This document shows positions 47,533-61,200 of a stretch of 64,000 nt of DNA, piece after piece. The position numbers and the translations under genes are program-made. A model generated the notes under the pieces. The model had not been told where the DNA came from. It saw only the letters and a list, made by a program, of their open reading frames with translations, and searched no databases. The stretch spans positions 1,178,001 to 1,242,000 of the forward strand of contig JBLDXI010000012.1 of assembly GCA_047495785.1 (NCBI GenBank), written 5' to 3'. Numbering within the stretch: position 1 is the first letter of the stretch; each line of letters starts with the position of its first letter. The DNA comes from Lepidodermella squamata (lineage: Eukaryota; Animalia; Gastrotricha).

Positions 47533-48121
47533 TTATTTTTCTGCGGCGGCACCGGTTTCGACGGCGACCGAGTACGAGAAGTTGTTGGAGGCCGAGTAGC
47601 TGCCGCTCTTGCTGCCCTTGCGACCCTTGCCGTGCTTGCCACCGTGCTTCTTGCCACCAAACTTCTTGCCGCCGTACTTCTTGCCACCGTGGCGCTTGTT
47701 GCCATGCTTCTTGTTGTAGCCGCCGAAGGAGCCCGATCGCGAGTACGAGCCGGACATGGATCCGCGCTGGTGCACGCGCATGAACTTCTTGGTGGAGACC
47801 TTGCGGGTGTGCTTGTTCGTGCGGGCCGACACCGACGCGGACACGGACTTGGAGAACGAGGCACGGCGGTGCTTGCGCCCAGCGACGAAGGCCTTCTTGG
47901 CCGGGCGCTTCTTCATCGCGTGCTTCTTCGGCTGCCGGTTGTACGACACGCTGATGGAGACGCTCTTCGAGACGCTTTTGCCCTTGTTACCACGGCCAGC
48001 CTCAACGCTGGTGAAAGCTGAAATTGGAATGAACATAAATGCAATGGGAAGTAATGACATGAGTATGATTTTTACCAAGGCCCATGAGGGCGACAGCAGC
48101 CAAAACTAGGACGGCGCGCAT
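47533..48121 (-). CDS. Secreted, highly cationic Ser/Gly/Lys/Arg-rich protein of unknown family (copy 1), 2 exons
   Basis: The signal exon MRAVLVLAAVALMGL|gtaaaa splices to AFTSVEAGRGNKGKSVSKSVSISVSY...GGKKYGGKKFGGKKHGGKH...*. Codon usage is strongly GC-biased, a TATA box lies upstream, and a paralog is at 56505-57075. Confidence 0.85.
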
Positions 48122-48934
48122 TCTGATTTTTTGAATAGGACGGAAAAGAGGAAGTTTTAATTTCGAAGGATTGATGATGATGCATTTGCTTGAGATCTCT
48201 TGAAGCTTTTATACGAGACTCTTTCATTTTCTGAGGCGCATTAGATTAGTTGTTGATTTCGAATTAGAAATTGACAATCGCCATGAAAATCATTAATGAT
48301 AAAACTCGATGATATTCTGTCAATAAGTCATGGCATCGACAATTCAAGAGGCTACGACTAGGTGGTTGAGAAATCACTGAGCACTGAGTGTTCTTAAGGA
48401 GTGCAGTTGATTATTGATCAAGAATTTTCGATCACACACGACCCTTCCGTACTTAACTACCAAGGTGAGTTTCTGGATTCTCCAGAATTTAAGTGCCAAT
48501 CCAGTCTGCTCTGGCGAAGGCTTGCCAATTCTTTTCCGTTTTTTTTGGACGAAAACCTAATTATTTAAAATCATCGTTGATATTAAAAATTAAAATAAAT
48601 TTTCGAGAAAAAAGAAACGAATGTAGAAATTGAAATGAATGACAAGCTGAATTTCTAACTTGAGCAAATGTTCACGTGAAAGCCATTTCACGTGGCCTTT
48701 AACCTGAAACCAAATAAAAAATTGCATCATGATCAAAACAACAAATGACCTGGGCCCACTGTCATTGCTATTTTTAGCATGTCTCACCCGTGCCAAAGCG
48801 CGCGCCAAAATCCGAACAAGCGCTATAAAATCCGCTTGAACACGGGGCCAACTCATCATCAATCAATAGCATTTCTCAGCTTTCTAGCTTTCGTTTTGTC
48901 ATATTTTTCCGCTCGTATCTAATCATCTACAAAA
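48122..48934. promoter_or_regulatory. Divergent promoter region shared by the cationic protein gene and sHSP copy 1
   Basis: TATAAAA on the minus strand at 48207-48213 and on the plus strand at 48824-48830, each about 90-110 bp before its ATG. Confidence 0.55.
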
Positions 48935-50520
48935 ATGGCCTGCTCTTTCGCTAACAACACTTCGTCCGTCCTGTCGGCTGGTTTCGACGGTCTTGCTGCC
49001 AAGCTCGGCCAATACAACCAATCTGGTCTGGCTGGCATCAACGCCGCCTCGGCTGCCACTGGCTTCGGCGCCAACAGCAACGTCTTTGGTGGTGTTCTCG
49101 GCGGTAACGGTAACGGTAACAACTGGGCTGGTGCCTACAACAACGGCCTCGTCGGCGGTCAGATCAACGCCAACAACGTCGCTGCTCAGGTCGGCGCCAA
49201 GATCGGCGCCCTGATCGGCCAGGAGTACGGTGCTCAGCTCGGTGCTGCCATCGCCGGCCAGCTGAACGCCACCTTCGGAGCCCAGTGGGCCGCCCAGCTG
49301 GGAGCTGCCTACGGCGCCGAGGTCGTCGCCGACTTGGGTGCCCAACTTGCCGTCTTCGCTGCCGCCACCGGATTCGGCGCCCAGTCGACCGCCCAGCAGG
49401 GTGCCCAGTGGGGTGCTCAGGCCGGCGCCCAGTTGGCCGCTGTTCTGGCTGCCAAGCTCGGCGGACAGGCTGCCGCTGCTGGTGCCTTCTTCGCCAACAA
49501 CCAGGCCGTCGCTCAGATCGGCGCCGCGATCATCTCGCAGGCTGGTGCCAAGCTGGGTGCCTGCGTCGCTGCCCAGATCAACGGCGGTGCCTTCGGTGCT
49601 GGTGCCAACGTCGCTGGCAACTTCGGCGGCTTCAACGCCCTAAACAACGGTCTGTTCGGTGGCCTGAACAGCTACAACGCCGGCCTCTTCGGAGCCAACC
49701 AGTTCAACAACTTCGGTGGTAACGTCAACAGCTTGGCTGGTGCCTACAACAACGGCCTCTTCGGTGGTGCCAACAACTTCTCTGGCCTCTTCGGTGGCAA
49801 CGCTGCCTTCAACGGTCAGTTCTCTGGCAACCAGCTGAACAACTTCGGAGCCAACTCCTTCGGCAGCCTCTTCGGCGGTGCCAACACCTTCGCCAACCAG
49901 GCTGGTCTCTTCGGCGGCAACATCAACGGCCTCTTCAACTCGCAGGCTGCCGCCGACAAGCTGTACAACATCGCCTTCCGCCCGTCCAGCCAGGCCGAGC
50001 TCTACACCCTGACCAACCCGGTGCAGTACGTCGACAACCAGGGCAACCGCCAGCTGTTCCTCGCCTTCGAGCTCAAGGGCTTCAAGCCTGAGGAGGTCGC
50101 CGTCACCCTGAACAAGGCCGAGCGCGCCGTCGTCGTCGAGGCTGCCCACGAGGCCAAGGACGGCAAGGAGCACACCGTCGCCCGCAAGTACTCGCGCAAG
50201 TTCGTCCTGCCCGAGGTGAGCTATTGAATCATTTCCAACTTGAAATGCTTATTTTTCTATATTTTCAGACCCTCGCCAAGGTCGAACTGGCCAAGGTTGA
50301 GCTCAAGTCGCAGCTGAATGCCAACGGCTTCCTGACCATCGAGGCCGAGCTGCCGAAGCTGAGCGCCGAGGAGATCGCCAAGCTGCCGGTTTCGTCGTCT
50401 CAGCTGCTCAACGCCGCTGCTCTGAACAACAGCAACGTCTACGGCAACGTCTTCGGTGGCAACAACGTCTACAGCAACATCGCCAACGCCGTCAAGCCCG
50501 TCACCGTCAAGACCGCCTAA
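48935..50520 (+). CDS. Small heat-shock protein (alpha-crystallin domain) with a 340-aa G/A/N/F-rich N-terminal extension (copy 1), 2 exons
   Basis: The C-terminal ACD reads LAFELKGFKPEEVAVTL...VVVEAAHE...RKYSRKFVLPE|...LKSQLNANGFLTIEAELP and ends with an IxI-like VKPVTVKTA. The N-terminus has GAQLGA repeats and GLFG repeats. Confidence 0.9.
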
Positions 50521-51297
50521 ATATGAAATCTGAAAGCCTAGGAGCATAGAAAAACTCTCAGTGAAAAGACTCGAACTAACGTGATTAACCAAGTGCGATC
50601 GGATTTTATTCAGAGATGCAATAAATCAGAACTTTTCTCTGTATTTCATAATTTCGTGGTGTCCATTCAATCGGTTACACCCCACTAATGACTTCAATGA
50701 ATGACTTCAATATTCCAATCTTCTTAACTGCTCCATACCCAAAGTTTTTAGGCCTTCATTTGATATCAACTAAACGCTTTCCCGGAGGAAAATCACGATT
50801 TCAATTTTACAAGTGGAAAGGTCCCACTTGAAGGTTTAGAATACCAGAGGTGCAAAGCAAATGGACTCAAACTAATGCAAATAGCCATCCCGAATTTAAA
50901 CTCGGGAAAACTACAATAAAACGTGAGCGAAGGGGATAAAACGGAAGAATTTGCTCTTTCTCTATCTAACTCGTACAAATGACAGTGTACCTGAATGGGC
51001 TCGTTCCGTTTTATCACATTTCACTGTGTATTTTTGGGTTGGGCAACGTAGGAGGGCGTAACCAAATTACTCTAACATAGGCTTTTGGCTGATAGTCAAT
51101 ATTCCCTCGGTATCTGAAGTACGGTTGCCGCTCAAACAGAGCTGATAAATCTGTCTCCTAAGGTAGGAATCACAGACCACTGTCTCGCGGTATGTCAATC
51201 GAAATGTATATGAATCAACCCCAGTCTTTATATATACGACTCGCTTCGTTTTATATAACCATTTTCACAAACTTTTACCGGGCACATCGAATAACAT

Positions 51298-52659
51298 ATG
51301 GCTATGAAGTTACTGGCTATCATTTCTTTACTTCTGGCATCGGCTTATGCTGACGCTCCATCGTCCTCATGGAACAACGTAGGGGGTAATCACGCTCACA
51401 CAGGTTATAAAGCCGAGTCATTCGCGGCAAGTAGCGGCGTTGAGCTTAAGCGAAAATTCGACGCGACTCTCGATACGAATGACGTTGAAAACGATCAAAT
51501 CGTAGCCCACGCCGGATGGATTTTTCAAATCGAGGACAAATGGCTGCTTCAAATCTACGATGCGGAGACCGGCCACCGTATTCGCACCCTCCGCTTATTC
51601 AATTCGGAGGCATTATGCGGCCAGCCGATGATAGCGCAACTTCGCGATGAAGTTTCGTTGTTCGTTCGATGCGAATTCTCAGCGACGCAGCGAGATGCCA
51701 ACATCAGTTTGATAAAAGTTAAATTGAACAACAATTCAGGCTGGAATGTGATATCGTTTCAAGGACATACGAATAATTACGCGCCCTCAAACTCCTTCGT
51801 CGATGTGATAAGCTGGAAGAAAGGCTATTGGTACACGGTTGCCGAGTCGAGAAATGTTATTGGGTTTTTCAATACGATGATACCGCAGCCGATAAAAGTT
51901 ACAATTCCGACTGTCGGCGACTCCGTACTTTATGCAGCTGCTTTAAGCGAGGATTATCAACGATTGTTTGTATCCCATGCCTTCTCCCTGACACAGATAG
52001 ACGCGGAAAGTGGGGTTATTCTAGGCACACTGCAATTTCAAGACCCAACCTTGGCGAGCTCAAAAGCAAGATGGTTCGTGCCGGTAGTAACGGGAAATCG
52101 AGCTATTGTCACATCTTTGACCTGCGACGCCGCGGCGTGCGAGATGCAACTACATGGCATTGACATAACAAGAGACGCGAAAATGTCTGTCGCTTGGACT
52201 TACAACTTCGGCCATTCGGATGATTATGTTCATGACAGCTTTGCCACGGATGGATCGTCAATCTACGCTGTGAACTTTGTAACGTCTGGGTTGCTTGTCA
52301 TCGACGTTACCACCGGGAAATTGATCAACACATTCCCTTGTGACAGCCTTGGCAGGGGTGTTAGTGCGCGGCCTTACACTATAGTCACGGATGACTATGT
52401 CTTCTCCGAGGCTTGTAAAGGGCTAACAGTCATGGACAAGAAAACTGGCAAGATAATTGACAAAACGCATGAGCCGGTCGCTGGGCTGTCCTATCATAAG
52501 AATGCTGTATATTTCCGGTATTATGATGAAGAAACTGGTAAGCAAGTAATCAGATCTGTCGCCTTGCAACAAGCTGTTATATCTATGAGCCCGATGACTG
52601 TCGGAAGTTTCGGAATCACGTCTCTATGTGCTGTTTTCGCCGTTTTCAGTGCCTTTTAA
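51298..52659 (+). CDS. Intronless secreted, probably GPI-anchored PQQ-like/BamB-like beta-propeller protein
   Basis: A 453-aa single ORF with a signal peptide, WNNVGGNHAHTGY, repeated blade ends (IYDAETGH, IDAESGV, IDVTTGK, MDKKTGK) and a hydrophobic C-terminal tail. Confidence 0.75.
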   Translation: MAMKLLAIISLLLASAYADAPSSSWNNVGGNHAHTGYKAESFAASSGVELKRKFDATLDTNDVENDQIVAHAGWIFQIEDKWLLQIYDAETGHRIRTLRLFNSEALCGQPMIAQLRDEVSLFVRCEFSATQRDANISLIKVKLNNNSGWNVISFQGHTNNYAPSNSFVDVISWKKGYWYTVAESRNVIGFFNTMIPQPIKVTIPTVGDSVLYAAALSEDYQRLFVSHAFSLTQIDAESGVILGTLQFQDPTLASSKARWFVPVVTGNRAIVTSLTCDAAACEMQLHGIDITRDAKMSVAWTYNFGHSDDYVHDSFATDGSSIYAVNFVTSGLLVIDVTTGKLINTFPCDSLGRGVSARPYTIVTDDYVFSEACKGLTVMDKKTGKIIDKTHEPVAGLSYHKNAVYFRYYDEETGKQVIRSVALQQAVISMSPMTVGSFGITSLCAVFAVFSAF

Positions 52660-53049
52660 CAGAGCATTCGTTCTATAATTCAATTCCATTGCAAATCGCT
52701 GTTATTGATTTGATTCGCATTTATATTTTTCTCATCTTTCACCTGTATCCAAGAGAGATTCAGTCTTTTGAAATGCTAGTCCAATGCGTTACCTATAATG
52801 TCGACCTATAATGACGGACACAATAAAATATATTATTATATTGAACTATGAAATTCTAATCGTTTCAGTTCAAGAATGTTGTTATTCTTTAAAAGTCGCT
52901 CCGAAAGTGACTATGACCCCACCGAACGCGGCCGCCTCGAGACCGCAGCTACCGGTGAAGGTCGGTGACCTCGTACGGCCAAGTTTGCGCTCAAGGCCAG
53001 ACCTCGTCATCCCGGTTAGGGTTTGTCGTTAGATGACGTTGGGGCCAGC

Positions 53050-53212
53050 TCCTGAAAAATTACCTGTTTTATATATAGCGAATTTCGATTTGTTAAATAT
53101 ACTCACCTATTCTGCAGTCTTCAGAAAGAGCCACGGCTATCAGAATAATACCCAAGGCGCTTCGTACAATTGGGCAAAAAGACATTTCTTGTAGCTGGTC
53201 GTCATTATCCAT
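53050..53212 (-). pseudogene. Frameshifted copy of the small membrane-protein gene at 28675-29049
   Basis: It is homologous to exon 1 of the first copy and keeps the gtgagt donor and ttttcag acceptor. Indels give MDNDDQLQEMSFCPIVRSALGLF*, which loses the TM reading frame. Confidence 0.6.
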
Positions 53213-53716
53213 TTTGAACGATGGATGCTTTGAGAGTTGAAGATTTTGCAAAGTTCAGACGAGTTATTTATGAAGATTTTATTTAATGAAAAACACCCTC
53301 CCCCGAGCAACAAAACTTTGGGTTTTTTCTGCCATCGTCGTAATCAATGAATTATTGATGTTGCATTCCCAGCATCATAAGTCATAAGTGTGTTTTTTCT
53401 CCCCTGCTTACCTGGAAGGTCGCCTTTTTTCAGGCCAAAGGGTGTGTGTGACCTCAAATATAAGTGACGCCGACTGGTGTTCCAAATTACTTCTCACGGT
53501 TTCTAGAATTACTTCGGAAATTTACTCAGGTGTGCAATAAAGCGGAAAATTACCGTGGTTATCTGAAAGCCGAACTTAATATCGAGTGAATAAAAAGATA
53601 AAAGGAGCTAGGAGTAATTAGGGCCAGACTATAGCCAGACTATATATATTATAATTATAACCAGGTCACGCGCTTATTGTGCGCATTTTTTCTCGCTTAC
53701 CTTCAATTATAAAACC

Positions 53717-54254
53717 ATGATTTCTTCGAAGTTTTGTTTCGTTTTCGCCGCTATTTTTGCGTTAGCAGCGGCGCGTGTCGATGACAAGTGTTTGAAATGC
53801 ATCTGCCAGGTAATTAGACGATACCTAATTGCGGCATATTGTTTACTGAAGCGTTTTTTAAGGTGGAGAGCAACTGTAATGTTAACTTCGGGTGTATAAT
53901 GGACGTCGGCTCGCTGTCTTGCGGTCCATACCAAATCAAGCAAGTCTACCACACCGAATGCAAGGCGAAAGGCGGCGTCGATTCCGACTGGAAAAAGTGC
54001 TCTAATTCAATGGCTTGTTCAGAGAAATGCATCCAAAATTACATGGATCGTTACGCAACTTCCTGCACTGGTGGAAAGGCACCAACTTGTGAGGTATAGC
54101 AAGCATTTTCCTTCTGTAGCTTTGCCGAACTAATTATTGCGTCGTTAATTAGGACTACGCCCGAATTCACAACGGAGGGCCGAAAGGCTGTAAATCAAGC
54201 TCGACAGCTGGTTACTGGAAAAAAGTCAAAGCCTGCCTCGACAAGTCGGGTTAA
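53717..54254 (+). CDS. Invertebrate (i-type) lysozyme, second copy, 3 exons
   Basis: CLKCICQ|VESNC...CIMDVGSLSCGPYQIKQVY...CE|DYARIHNGGPKGC...YWKKVKACLDKSG*, with the same intron positions as the 29586 copy. Confidence 0.95.
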
Positions 54255-54618
54255 GCTCTTGATGCTCTTGAAGTTCCTATAAACAATATTGCTATATATT
54301 ATTGATGACCATGTATTGCTCTAATTGCTATTATTTCGCTTGCTCTTTACGCGCACAACCGATTATTTTCACATAATAAAATAGCTTCGTGACGAGGAGG
54401 CGAACCTGGACCCTATTAGTCTGTTAGACCACCAAGACTGTAACTGAAATTCAATCATCGGACTGAGTCATAGCATGCAATTTTTACGCAACATCTCTTG
54501 TTTTACTGTCTCGAGAAAAACTGCGAATAGCACAAGAGTATCACATCGAATGGTATCACAATTTTTCTCAAGCAAAGTTCTTTAACATTGCGCATAATTG
54601 CTTCTCGTTAGATTTCAT

Positions 54619-55907
54619 TTAAGCGGTCTTGACGGTGACGGGCTTGACATCGTAGGAACGGCGGTTGATGGCGTTGATGCCGCCGAAGGCCTGGACGGCG
54701 GCGTTGAAGCCTCCGAAGGCGGGCAGCTTGTTGTACAGCTCGGACATGGTCGGGCACTTGGCGATCTCCTCGGTGGTCATCTTCGGCAGCTGGCACTCGA
54801 CGACGAGGTGGCCCTCCTGGGTCAGGCACGACTTGAGCTCAACCTTGGTCAGGTCGATCTTGGCAAGGGTCTGAAATTGAGACGAATTTAGGGATATTAG
54901 TTAGAGGAGCTAAGAAATCTCACCTCGGGCAGGACGAACTTGCGCGAGTACTTGCGGGCGACGGTGTGCTCCTTGCCGTCCTTGGCCTCGTGGGCAGCCT
55001 CGACGACGACGGCGCGCTCGGCCTTGTTCAGGGTGACGGTGACTTCCTCAGGCTTGAAGCCCTTGAGCTCGAAGCACAGGTACAGCTGGCGGTTGCCCTC
55101 GACGTCGATCATGCGGATCGGGTGGGTCAGGGTGTAGAGCTCGACCTCGGAGGACGGGCGGAAGGCGATGTTGTACAGCTTGTTGTCAGCCGACAGGCTG
55201 TTCGACCAGGTGTTGGCGCCGAAGGTGGTCGGGTAGTTGAGGCCACCGAAGCGCTCGAACGAGCCGGTCCAGTTGTTGGCGAGGCGGGCACCACCGAAGC
55301 GCGACTCGGCGACGCGGGCGGCGATGACGTAGCACTGCTTGGCGCAGACGTCGGCGAAGAGCTCGGCGCCGATGCGGGCGGCGAACTCGGCGGTGTAGAT
55401 GGCACCCAGGCGCTGGGCGATGATGGCACCCAGTTCGGCGCCGTGCTCGGCTCCGAAGGTGTAGCACCAGCGGGCGCACTGCTCGACCGGCCAGCCGTTG
55501 ACGAGCTTGACGGCGAGCTCGGCACCCAGCTTGGCGCACATCTCGGCTCCCCACTGGGCGCCGATGCGGACGGCCACCTCCTGGCCGACGAAGGTGTTGA
55601 GGCGGGCGGCGACGATGGCGGCCAGCTGGGCACCGCACTCGGCACCGAAGACGCGGCCGGTCTCGGCTCCGCACTCGATCGGCGAGGCGAAGGTGTTGTA
55701 GGCGATCGGGGACGAGGCGAAGGCATTGACGTTGTGGATGCCAGCAGCAGCGGCGAACGGGGTCGGGACGGCGGCGTTGATGAGGCTGCGCTCAACAGAC
55801 GACGGCGAGTAGATGTCGACCTTGTTGCGGAGCAGGCTCTCGACGTTCATCGGGCTGGTGTAGCCAGCGGCGAAGGTCGAGGGGATCGAGGTGTATGAGC
55901 AAGCCAT
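54619..55907 (-). CDS. Small heat-shock protein with a glycine-zipper-like N-terminal domain (copy 2), 2 exons
   Basis: It starts MACSY (copy 1 starts MACSF), has GAECGAQLAA/GAQWGAE/GAELGA repeats, an ACD nearly identical to copy 1, the same intron position and the same VKPVTVKTA* end. Confidence 0.9.
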
Positions 55908-56504
55908 TTTAGAGTTTGAAGAGGATCAAAACACGAACGAAAATGAAAGCGAGAAGATTGCTGTGAGCTTTAAATTGCAAAAGCAGGTGATGATCGTAGC
56001 TAATCAGCAGAACGCCTTATATAAGCCAAAATTCGAATAAGGCACGCGACGTACACAATCAAAAATTGCTCGTGTGCTTCTATTGGTCACACGATCCGAT
56101 TTCATTGTGACACGAATAAACCTACTGGCAACTGGCCATCAAAAGCTCCTAAAATAATGAGAGTTGGATACTCGCAAAAACTCTAATCCCTTTTAACCTT
56201 TGTGGTCGAGGAAGGTCGATAAGATGCGAAGTGATCTGAAATGAAAGTGAGAAAAATATTATACATTGAACAAAAGTTGGTTCAGTATAGATTGCTAGTA
56301 AGCTAACAAATAATATTTCCATGAAGATCAATCCCTCATTATTTCGGCATCCACGGCCAGTTGTGCGGTGTGCGGCAGAATAGTAATCCTGATGTGTCTG
56401 AAAGGATAGACGAAGTCACAGAATAATGCTACCTTATTTCCTGAATTCTTTAATTTTTATTTCGAAAATGAAAAGGTCGAAAATAAATTATCGAATGTTA
56501 TCAA

Positions 56505-57075
56505 TTATTTGCTGGGAGCAGCACCGGTTTCGACGGCAACCGAGTAGGAGAAGTTGTTGGAGGCCGAGTAGCTGCCGCTCTTGCTGCCCTTGCGACCCTT
56601 GCCGTGCTTGCCACCAAACTTCTTGCCGCCGAACTTCTTGCCACCGTGGCGCTTGTTGCCGCCCTTCTTGTTGTAGCCGCCGAAGGAGCCCGATCGCGAG
56701 TACGAGCCGGACATGGATCCGCGCTTGTGCACGCGCATGAACTTCTTGGTGGAGACCTTGCGGGTGTGCTTGTTCGTGCGGGCCGACACCGACGCGGACA
56801 CGGACTTGGAGAACGAGGCACGGCGGTGCTTGCGCCCAGCGACGAAGGCCTTCTTGGCCGGGCGTTTCTTCATCGCGTGCTTCTTCGGCTGCCGGTTGTA
56901 CGACACGCTGATGGAGACGCTCTTCGAAACACTTTTGCCCTTATTTCCGCGGCCAGCCTCAACCTCGGAGAGAGCTGGTATAGATATAAACAAAAATTCA
57001 CTTCATTAGGTCGAAATTTTCCCAGTTACCAAAAGCCATAAGGACGACAGCAGCTAAAGCGAAAACAGCACGCAT
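56505..57075 (-). CDS. Secreted, highly cationic Ser/Gly/Lys/Arg-rich protein (copy 2), 2 exons
   Basis: The signal exon MRAVFALAAVVLMAF|gtaact splices to ALSEVEAGRGNKGKSVSKS...; the mature part is nearly identical to copy 1. Confidence 0.85.
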
Positions 57076-57883
57076 TTTGATTTTTTGGAGAGAAGAACCA
57101 AGAATAATCAGCGAATGTAATCAGATGCTGTTTTCTGTAATCATTCGGATATATAAACCCTGTGATGGTCAATAATCGAGGCGTAGCAATTAATTGAATC
57201 CATCACTTATGTGTTGCAAAAATTATATTCTAATTGGAATCTCCCTCGAACCGAATCAAATTATGGCTTATGGATTCTCATTCGAAAATTTCTCTGAATC
57301 TGTCGTCTCAGTAGAGCCATGAAAACGCCTGCGGATCTCCTAATCCTAGGGTGAATAAAACTATCAATTCACCATGTATACTTGGCATTTCACATTGCTG
57401 AATCATCAGCATTCGATTGAGCTCCAAGCCTTGTACTATTAAGGGTCAAGTGATGACACCTGTAACGTCTTCATCTGTCCATAAAACAATCTCACTTCGT
57501 AGAAACCGATTTTATTCTTTCCTTTCCAGCTTTCATAAGCACATCATTTTCCACTCGTATTCGCTCAAAAGCGTGTACTGAAAAAAAGCAACGACGATTA
57601 CAAGACGAACATGTCGATAAACAGAGACTTTTTCAGGTCAACAAAAAACTCGTGCGATATTTTCTCTTTTTTCATAATATGTTGAAATAATAAGATAGAT
57701 TTTCTGCTTTTTCGTAACCAATTTTCTTACACCAGAAATCTACAGCAAAAAGCGCATCGCTGTCAACAAGAAGACGCAGAGAGATAAAGACAGACAATTT
57801 TTATTTCGAACTTATCGCAATTTTATAATAAGAATAATTTTCCCCGAATATTTACACAGAGAAGCAAGAAGAACTCGCAGTGC

Positions 57884-58294: not shown

Positions 58295-61200
58295 TTATTC
58301 AGCTGTTCCTTTTTCTTCGCTTAAAACACGGGGTCGTTTCAAATCTTGGTCTTTTTTCGCGTCCGAAGACGGCGGCGCCCCTGACGCCGAGTGAGACGAT
58401 AGCGAGTCGTCCAGCGAGCCGTCGCCCTCGCTGCCCTCCGAGCCTTCATCCTCGTCCTCGATCGAGCCGCGCGAGTTCGAATTCGAGTTATTGCTATCCT
58501 CCGCGTTTTTCATCCGAGGCAACACCGTCATGGCCCGTTTCGCCTTACGGTCATGCCCGCTGTCTTCATCGTCCTCCGAGCCGTCGCTGTGCTGCACGCC
58601 GAACGTACACGCCGAGCCGCGCCGCACCGCCCCGCTCACCGTCCGCATTTGCTGCTGAACAGGCTGCTGCTCCTGCGTTGAGTTGCTGATGTCCTCCCGG
58701 CTGTTCCGAACCGCCGAGTCGGAGCAACCCGGCTGCCGGGCGTGTTTGCTCGACCGGGCGCCCTCAGCCGCGCGCCACTCTTCGTGTTGAGCTTGAGCTG
58801 GATTGCCCTCCTCCGCCTCCACGTCGCCGACTAGCCTGTTCAGGTAGTGGAATAGGTGCATGGCTTCGGTGGGCGTGGTCGATGTGAGCAAGAATACGCG
58901 CATCGCGCCCGTCTCCACCTCGGACGCCGTCACGTGGATGCCGCGGGCTGACACCTGTTTCAGGCGCATGCCGGCGAAGATGGGCGAGTTCATGAGCAGG
59001 CGGAAGATGCCTTGTTGGCGCATGACGATGCGACACTTCTGCGTTGTCCGGTCGCGGTTGATTTTCACGAGACCGCGGCCGCGCTCGAGCCACGTGTTCT
59101 TTTGACTGTCGAAAACGTGGAGCTTGCATGTTGCCTGAAAAAAAGTAAAAAAATATAGCGATTTTTCAAATTAAAGCTAAATGCATTTTAAATTATTCTT
59201 CATGATTTCACGGAAGAAAAGCTGGAAATTTTGGTATATTATTTACTTCAGTGGGATTTTTACGCATTTTGACAAGTTACCAAGTTCATCAGCATTTAGA
59301 TGGCAATTAAAACATAAAGTACTCTCAAAACATAAGCCGGGAAATCGCCAACCGATACAGATGAATGATGCTGATGAATAACCGAAGGATGTGTTCGCAT
59401 TTTTTTAATGTACTGTTATTAGCCTCATTTTTATTGAGCCTGCCAAATATTTCATCAATCCAAGTTGCCATAACCATATTTTGTGCCAACATTTAAGACT
59501 GCTTCGAAATTGGACAGTAAAAACGGCTTTGAGATCTTCTACGCAATACCGGGGGTTGATTCCGAGGGCTAAATCGGCGAATCAACCGACCCCTCTAGTA
59601 TCGAAATTTTTAACTTACTTCTCTATTTTGTAAAACTGATCAGTGATCGGATATATTGATCATTTATTTTGATCAAACATTAACAAAATCGGCCATTTTT
59701 ACTATGATAAAAACAACACGTGATCAATTTCTACTTTTTCTGCCTCTAATAAGCGATGACTACTAACGGGGGAGTGCTGATTGCAGGGTTGAAGTTATTG
59801 AGGGAGCAATGTGTAAATTACGACAGCAACCTCGGGAAACGTTTGGGGAGGGCGAGATAGAGTTCCCCTCCTTGACGGCCAGGAGGGGAATTGACGCCCT
59901 CTACTCAAGCTGAGCTGTCAAAGCAAACAAATCAATCCATATTTTCTCGTGTCCCATATATTGCTGGCAATTGCCTTGGGGTTAAGACTTTCAGATAATG
60001 TAACTTTAGAGACTTTAGAGACGCCTTGTATCCCATTTTAATCACAGCCTAACGCCTTTAAACTATATTAATGGCTTGGTATTATTGAGCCCAGTGTAAT
60101 CATATAAATTCAAGATTCTAGTAGAATCTGGTTTAATTAGCTTAAATCGATCTAAATAAACGTTCACCTAATTGTGATCGCTTCAATTTTCAAGGCCCAG
60201 GGCAATGAAGATGAAGAAATTTTGTCAAGTGATAGCTTCAGTATGTATCTAAAAATGTAACAAAACTGTTGACCTCGTTCCAGCTATTTGTTTGAAATGT
60301 TGACTTCGATTTTCTAGCTGAAAATCATGGAAGTTTTCCAAACAATATATTTAAAAACTCGCAATTCGATCAAATTTTTTGCTAAAGATATAGCCACTGC
60401 TTTCAAGATGAACAAGATAATAAGCATAGAGCACATCAATAACTGGGACCAATGATTCAAAAAATAAAATTTGCGAAAATGACACGTGGTCAGACTGTCT
60501 ACAATTGCGGGTAATTTCATTAGTGACATATCGTCCGTAGGGAAATTAAAAAGTCAATTTTAATTCAATTACGCCTTAGGAAAATCTGGCAGTGACAATT
60601 TATCAGCGACAAATGAGCAAAGAACAATTCATCACTTTTACATGAACAATTTTTGAATCTAATTTGCCTTGTTTTGATACGTCGGTACTTGATTTGAAGT
60701 ATAAAGCATAGATAAACTGCCGAAAACTGCCTATTACTATGATGAAATCTCGCAGTTGACGTCTTAAAACCGAATGCCGGAGCAGAAATAAAAAAGACAT
60801 GGAAAAAGCTCAATTTCAGTCCGGAAATTATGTTTACAAATAATTTTGTCTCCGGTTTTTAAGTGCTCGAACGGTTGAAGATTATGCTTTTTGTATCAAA
60901 TTCATATTTTTCACTATACCTAGTTCAAAACCCTGCACCATTCATATTTTTTGAAAGAAGCCAGTTCCGTTAATCAGTAATTTTCATCTCGAAATCCTCT
61001 TCTCTACATTTTCTAAAATTAATGCCTGAAATTCCTATTTTAAATTTTCCGAAATTCGAAAGTTCAACATACATGGAATAAAGTGTCTTCATTTTCTTCG
61101 CCGGTTTCCAACGATGCAACAGGTGGCGGCAGGCGATTGATATTGAAAACGTTCAGATTCTCCGGAGTTTGGAAAACCGATTTTTCAACTGAAGGACTTG

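Follow-up and report, generated by a model that had tools for sequence, protein, structure and literature searches.

We analysed a 64,000-nucleotide (nt) stretch of the genome of the gastrotrich Lepidodermella squamata (contig JBLDXI010000012.1, positions 1,178,001 to 1,242,000 of the forward strand; the whole stretch is referred to here as the window), in which two unrelated genes of unusual composition, designated A and B, lie next to each other at two places. Reading of both strands identifies four intact two-exon genes, named A1, B1, B2 and A2, with introns of 53–58 nt and TTTCAG-type splice acceptors (Table 1). A1 and B1 are oriented head to head, while A2 and B2 are arranged in tandem. 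These gene models agree with an original prediction, made from the letters of the stretch, that a neighbouring pair of unusual genes is present twice, once divergent and once tandem. It also described the pairs as a duplicated module. The two pairs are real, but they do not represent a twofold local duplication; the genome has about 59 copies of A and about 45 of B, of which these four genes are a sample. We consider it probable that A and B lie side by side through descent, within a dosage-amplified multi-gene block that also carries genes for U3 small nucleolar RNA (snoRNA) and U6 small nuclear RNA (snRNA). This replaces an apparent new two-protein system by a testable genomic explanation.

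Third codon positions are strongly GC-rich in all four genes, as had been predicted. Their GC content at these positions (GC3) is 0.81–0.93, compared with 0.79 in tubulin-like open reading frames (ORFs) and 0.47–0.56 in neighbours encoding a caveolin, a lysozyme and a protein of 453 amino acids (aa). Because the introns of the same four genes have a GC content of just 28–36%, the GC richness of A and B is a feature of codons and not of the region. GC-biased conversion as its source is ruled out by the same intragenic introns. Codon bias together with copy number suggests that A and B are probably expressed at a very high level.

Table 1. Features of the A and B genes in the window (window coordinates), with examples of U6 snRNA genes at other A loci (locus coordinates).
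Feature	Coordinates	Strand	Remarks
A1 exon 2	47533..48017	-	mature polycationic protein: four (SX)n stripes and Gly/Lys/aromatic block, including stop codon; ORF and splice acceptor
A1 exon 1	48076..48121	-	signal peptide, GT donor at end; 46-nt exon with conserved hydrophobic core in 27 copies
A1 TATA box and A-type upstream box	48208..48239	-	TATA box 48208-48213; upstream box 48233-48239
B1 promoter	48673..48829	+	CACGTG boxes at 48673 and 48689; TATA box 48824-48829
B1 exon 1	48935..50215	+	N-terminus, Gly/Ala helical domain, Asn/Gly/Phe linker, first part of alpha-crystallin domain; Pfam HSP20 26.5 bits and family alignment
B1 exon 2	50269..50520	+	presumed end of alpha-crystallin domain, C-terminal tail with V-x-V motif
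B2 exon 2	54619..54870	-	89-100% identity to other B2-type copies
B2 exon 1	54924..55907	-	Cys-rich helical-domain variant and alpha-crystallin domain; Pfam HSP20 29.3 bits
B2 TATA box and B-type box	56018..56048	-	TATA box 56018-56023; CACGCG/CGCGTG box 56043-56048 (141 nt 5' of ATG)
A2 exon 2	56505..56974	-	
A2 exon 1	57030..57075	-	signal peptide
A2 TATA box and A-type upstream box	57150..57184	-	TATA box 57150-57157
U6 behind A (examples)	L032:7917-8022, L034:8012-8117, L003:2249-2354		16 further places

Products of the A and B genes

The spliced gene models were searched exon by exon, and exons were joined only for local counts of residues and codons. A had been predicted to be a secreted polycationic protein and B a low-complexity, non-secreted small heat-shock protein (HSP), and both identities are borne out. 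Exon 1 of A1 and A2 encodes a classic signal peptide and exon 2 the mature chain, which is about 150 aa long and has an isoelectric point (pI) of about 12. The mature chain of A1 (pI 11.7) contains 42 Lys and Arg, 8 His, 2 acidic, 26 Ser and 23 Gly residues and no Cys. Both proteins, which are 90% identical, have four alternating Ser-x runs, each 10–12 residues long, and a Gly/Lys/aromatic block. Apart from its own match at 100%, exon 2 of A1 finds 47 other copies in the genome at 91–98% identity.

Neither a word search covering 5.8 billion proteins nor an exhaustive HMMER search against 1.84 billion representative proteins found a relative of A; the ESM Atlas and metagenome contigs likewise gave none, and no family in Pfam or NCBIfam is matched. 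By sequence comparison, A is an orphan, lineage-specific protein in the databases searched. It is most likely the exported bulk building material of a secreted structure such as cuticle or scales, egg shell or glue, and would leave the cell as a 150-aa polycation with beta-strand-prone Ser-x stripes. The many near-identical copies appear to argue for dosage and not for diversification; because the products of so many copies are near-identical, a bulk material would fit better than an arms-race antimicrobial.

Sandcastle worm cement proteins are polybasic proteins with Gly, Lys and Tyr, and A resembles them in its basic Gly/Lys/aromatic blocks, its secretion and its aquatic host. A second resemblance is to the (SX)n blocks of caddisfly H-fibroin (PMC13267644, PMC4929942), which likewise has alternating Ser-x stripes, is secreted and comes from an aquatic animal; in A, the stripes of 10–12 residues alternate with strongly basic and Gly/Lys/aromatic blocks. 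However, there is no sequence homology between caddisfly fibroin and A, which is only about 150 aa and not thousands of residues long, and the caddisfly (SX)nE units, which occur with Gly-rich spacers in a repetitive phosphoserine silk, close with Glu whereas the stripes of A have no closing Glu. By analogy, A seems to follow a design resembling caddisfly silk and worm cements, but is not a member of those families.

B1 and B2 consist of 510 and 411 aa, respectively, have no signal peptide and start right after a leader of 87–110 nt that is free of upstream ATG. Both exceed the typical size of small HSPs (about 12–43 kDa, a range which is typical but not strictly defining). The scores of both against the HSP20 profile (PF00011) lie above its curated cut-off of 20.8 bits (Table 1), with exon 1 spanning profile positions 6–65 of 102. 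Exon 2 alone does not match the HSP20 profile, and that of B1 by itself matches no family at all; by eye, the usual G-x-L-x-I...P-K ending is present in it. Four residues ahead of the stop codon, B1 and B2 have the sequence V-T-V, which corresponds to the C-terminal I/V-x-I/V anchoring motif. The two proteins are 44% identical over 289 aligned residues, and their alpha-crystallin parts are nearly identical.

The front part of B, 240–340 aa in length, is made of a four-helix Gly/Ala domain and an Asn/Gly/Phe linker. No relatives of this part were found in the word search, and the whole exon 1 of B2 has no match in metagenome contigs or among the sequences of the PDB. An AlphaFold2 model of B2 exon 1, which is of low confidence (mean predicted local distance difference test score, pLDDT, of 45), places four long helices at residues 76–207, after which come a disordered linker and, further on, beta strands. 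The helical domain of B2 (window 55173-55700, minus strand) and that of another family member, B5, contain at least 8 Cys, among them two C-x3-C pairs separated by about 44 residues, while B1 carries other residues at the positions of these pairs. The paired cysteines of B2 and B5 could be involved in disulfide or metal cross-linking.

Small HSPs are known as bulk or structural proteins from several systems, namely lens alpha-crystallin, ODF1/HSPB10 of the sperm tail, p26 of the Artemia cyst and the schistosome egg antigen p40. B is comparable to these in having an HSP20 domain, a presumably abundant non-stress role and no heat-shock elements, and B2 is Cys-rich, as is ODF1. Unlike them, B has a front part of 240–340 aa without relatives and exists in about 45 copies. 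No three-unit heat-shock element is present in the A promoters or in the 29 B promoters, and matches to two units are rarer there than in the window background, which together rule out heat-shock regulation. B is most likely a small HSP with a structural or storage role that assembles with itself and is expressed constitutively or during development. It would stay in the cell as a large, self-assembling protein that is not heat-inducible.

A multi-gene block with U3 and U6 RNA genes

The genome (121.2 Mb in 151 contigs) was searched in six frames, and the copy numbers of A and B given above are minimum values, taken from an assembly for which amplified DNA was probably used. Arrays that hold only A or only B genes were analysed by their coordinates. 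B falls into a B2 type with 19 copies, a B1 type with 7 copies and other subfamilies with a further 19 copies. B2-type copies share 95–100% amino-acid identity over matched stretches (87–99% gapped), and the first exon of B is open in all 30 readable copies. The original prediction had asked whether the linkage of the two families recurs elsewhere, and the answer is strongly positive, with 20 linked genes among the 26 of the B1 and B2 types. An A gene is present within 3 kb of 17 of the 19 B2-type genes and of 3 of the 7 genes of the B1 type; the 19 other B genes have none at this distance. Linkage of A and B therefore recurs but is confined to the B1 and B2 subfamilies. Among the 17 linked B2 genes, 13 have an A gene immediately upstream and on the same strand, and 6 have A genes on both sides. 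All three B1-linked A genes are head to head with B1, as in the window. Seen from the other family, 26 of the 59 A genes have a B neighbour within 3 kb.

A scan with Rfam models at the module loci, complemented by genome-wide counts of U6 and U3, reveals that the linked genes are part of a larger arrangement. A U3 snoRNA gene follows 12 of the 19 B2 genes on the same strand, about 330–770 bp past the B2 stop codon (loci L026–L042; for example L032:6089-6320), and these 12 represent 41% of the 29 U3 genes in the genome. The U3 copies at L029 and L030 score just about 55 bits and may be decaying. Similarly, 19 of the 31 U6 snRNA genes of the genome (61%) come after an A gene on the same strand, the distance from the A stop codon being 219–320 bp for 18 of them and 899 bp for one. 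At 219–320 bp behind A, the U6 promoter must overlap an RNA polymerase II gene, probably a very active one, at its 3' end. U2 and tRNA genes are also found in the blocks. The complete order A-B2-U3-A-U6, which extends over about 5 kb, is present at L032 and L034 on contig C12 and at L035 and L038 on contig C29, and partial orders are present at L026, L036 and L040. Two lineage-specific and very probably highly abundant protein families are thus interleaved with most of the U6 and many of the U3 genes of the genome. No third GC3-rich protein family recurs among the GC3-rich ORFs of 20 module loci. An HSP70-like ORF (GC3 0.74) is located at L032:8798-9901 (minus strand), about 0.8 kb beyond the A-B2-U3-A-U6 block, and runs off the end of the locus.

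The history of the block was read from a tree of the 5' untranslated region (UTR), exon 1 and intron of A, a part of the gene which is not homogenised and keeps historical signal. In this tree, all six A copies located downstream of B2 form one clade, while upstream A copies fall in other clades, across contigs. Such position-specific clades imply that the block was copied whole, and that the adjacency of A and B derives from one or very few ancestral arrangements. It follows that the roughly 20 linked pairs should not be counted as 20 independent cases.

These results favour descent from an ancestral block of about 5 kb, with the order A (upstream type)-B2-U3 snoRNA-A (downstream type)-U6 snRNA, which would have been copied many times in one piece and spread over at least three contigs. 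Since the window has no Rfam match, and no RNA gene was found beside either of its modules, the two modules appear to be eroded versions of the block, one being A2-B2 without RNA genes and the other a head-to-head arrangement of A1 and a B1-type gene. Very high demand, and not a joint mechanism, would then be what A, B, U3 and U6 have in common. As a fallback, the original prediction had offered that the pairing is a by-product of duplication and inversion. It is this fallback that fits best, although the scale is far beyond two copies.

The nearest known parallel to the block is the histone repeat of Hydractinia, which includes 5S rRNA, U1 and U2 snRNA and tRNA genes (PMC5011920); 5S-histone repeats are also known from Artemia and bivalves (cited in PMC5011920). 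In both the Hydractinia repeat and the block, unrelated and heavily used genes have been copied as a unit in a fixed order, with their functional parts evolving in concert. However, the protein genes of the block are not histones but lineage-specific genes for an orphan polycation and a giant small HSP. Furthermore, gene order and orientation are fixed in the block, but it does not form a uniform head-to-tail array with conserved spacers; its copies are dispersed on several contigs at a spacing of 5–70 kb, and their spacers and introns are fully diverged.

The presence of the RNA genes raises another possibility, that the block is a selected high-output unit in which a shared open-chromatin or nuclear-body hub with U3, U6, U2 and tRNA genes boosts output, for example for rapid egg provisioning. 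Cajal-body-associated snRNA and histone loci serve as a model for a hub of this kind. Such a unit would be consistent with the high share of U6 (61%) and U3 (41%) genes located in blocks, with the tightly conserved spacing of 219–320 bp between A and U6, and with the conservation of order and orientation but not of spacers. However, the window modules have no RNA gene and yet their genes look intact, with conserved promoters, and hitch-hiking during duplication is a simpler account of the same pattern; a selected hub is, in our judgement, decidedly unlikely. We regard as quite unlikely, too, the proposal that A-B2-U3-A-U6 is a selected high-output cassette, for which a small, few-celled animal would have placed two orphan bulk-protein families inside U6/U3/tRNA arrays so that they share one hyper-transcribed hub, perhaps for rapid production of eggs or cuticle, with intron-sparing homogenisation keeping the products identical. 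The blocks lend themselves naturally to the study of how gene output is scaled up in small animals, and the roughly 100 A and B genes probably encode major gastrotrich materials.

Separate promoters of A and B

Each of the four genes in the window has a TATA box of its own, and those of the divergent genes A1 and B1 are about 610 bp apart. The TATA box is located at a fixed distance from the ATG, which is about 90 nt for A genes and about 116 nt for B genes, and both families have an ATCATCA-type start region. CACGCG/CGCGTG/CACGTG boxes are present in 28 of 29 B promoters as opposed to 1 of 27 A promoters. One such box is usually located at -141/-143 and a second one at about -180 to -270. The density of CACGCG/CGCGTG is 3.8 per kb in B promoters compared with 0.44 per kb in the window. 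Conversely, a GCGCYTC-type box is found in 11–13 of 25–27 A promoters but in only 0–3 of 28–29 B promoters. No non-trivial word shared between A and B promoters was found. At the head-to-head pair, only the proximal 90–300 bp belonging to each gene are conserved among the four close B1 copies.

The original prediction had proposed a co-regulated module. Because the boxes of A and B show opposite distributions, being mutually exclusive, co-regulation by the proximal promoters is unsupported, and the proximal promoters do not support a single shared switch. Under descent within an amplified block, each gene would be driven by its own TATA/initiator promoter, and each family would use its own upstream box.

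An alternative reading is that A and B act as a functional pair, co-expressed in one specialised cell such as a shell-making oocyte, a scale-building epidermal cell or a gland cell. A would then be the exported material, while B would be an abundant cytosolic holdase or condensate that supports the cell or is stored with the product. The linkage kept in 20 of 26 B1/B2 genes despite randomised spacers is in line with such a pair, as are the TATA and initiator promoters of both families, their shared GC3 range and their copy numbers of about 45–59. The lack of heat-shock elements in either family also suits it, as B would then be driven developmentally or constitutively and not by stress. However, besides the mutually exclusive proximal boxes, 33 copies of A and 25 of B lack a partner at 3 kb or less, the blocks also hold U3, U6, U2 and tRNA genes without a conceivable role in such a pair, and the A and B proteins belong to different compartments. 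We consider a functional pair rather unlikely.

Adjacency by descent, which we prefer, has several points to its disadvantage. The adjacency has outlasted complete turnover of the spacers at about 20 places and exists in two orientations, tandem and divergent, and this persistence and variety could together reflect selection for proximity. A and B are also alike in promoter architecture (TATA box and ATCATCA-type initiator), in extreme codon bias and in similar copy numbers. The regulatory comparison covers proximal promoters only, and the copies were counted in an assembly that probably goes back to amplified DNA, with part of the arrays read.

Near-identical exons and diverged flanks

Alignable DNA between copies ends near the ends of the transcripts. 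For A it begins about 14 nt 5' of the ATG and ends at the stop codon, and for B2 it reaches from the initiator to some 140 nt beyond the stop codon, while the spacer between A and B is alignable in only one pair. The structured coding cores are 95–100% identical in nucleotide sequence (19 B2 and 27 A copies), UTRs are 50–80% identical and spacers are random. The 53-nt intron of B2 (window 54871-54923 and 18 other copies) falls into at least four mutually unalignable classes, although it is situated between exons that are 99–100% identical with synonymous sites included. These intron classes cut across two N-terminal variants, which indicates that B2 genes are mosaics.

Codon identity at sites with an invariant amino acid was compared with the identity expected if each copy merely used the preferred codons of its family. 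It is 0.975 against an expected 0.743 in B2 and 0.917 against 0.542 in A; for individual residues of B2, the observed and expected values are 0.96 and 0.44 for Gly and 0.94 and 0.33 for Ser. Codon bias alone as the source of exon identity is ruled out by this excess, and homogenisation limited to exons is needed to account for it. The homogenisation would most simply be gene conversion, blocked by diverged introns and flanks, plus selection, although this does not explain why the 53-nt intron is spared. Both families would have been amplified for dosage, with gene conversion and selection keeping the coding cores near-identical while introns and spacers drift freely.

Concerted evolution limited to coding regions is known from hsp70 pairs and globins. 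A and B are similar to these in having near-identical exons, including synonymous sites, and diverged flanks, but an unalignable intron of 53 nt between exons that are 99–100% identical is unusual for ordinary conversion tracts. The B2 genes may therefore be of use in understanding how homogenisation is limited to exons with a free intron of this size between them.

The divergence between copies also bears on the quality of the assembly. The published L. squamata assembly (122 Mb, 157 contigs) was made from DNA obtained by multiple displacement amplification (MDA; PMC11660948), which creates chimeric and palindromic reads, so that the repeats might be artefacts of assembling amplified DNA. However, introns, UTRs, linker lengths and all flanking DNA vary from copy to copy. 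Because of these differences such an artefact is effectively refuted, extremely improbable as it now appears, and the copies are true paralogues.

A divergent A subfamily with 64–76% identity is located, by its coordinates, on C29:760000-1210000, where about 11 copies lie 8–140 kb apart without B genes. In four of these genes, U6 is situated about 0.7–1.7 kb upstream of A and not downstream. At L027:6406-7437 (minus strand) an A gene is split, with residues 1–72 and 71–160 about 550 bp apart, which suggests an insertion. Other copies are broken as well: C29:2557486 holds part of an A gene containing a TAA stop, and C29:884140 part of a B gene containing two of them.

Between the two modules of the window, a 453-aa ORF (51298-52659, plus strand) has a signal peptide, a C-terminal hydrophobic tail, ordinary codon usage with a GC3 of 0.51, and no Pfam match. 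Just outside the modules lies a GC3-rich ORF (0.77; 257 aa; 58295-59068, minus strand), whose product has a tail that is acidic and rich in Ser. The 1.3 kb located 3' of B2 (window 53290-54619), which contain a destabilase-type lysozyme gene (53717-54099, Pfam PF05497), are common to L033 and L039 at 91% identity. This shared downstream segment indicates that the B2 copies of the window, L033 and L039 are part of a different, larger duplicated segment.

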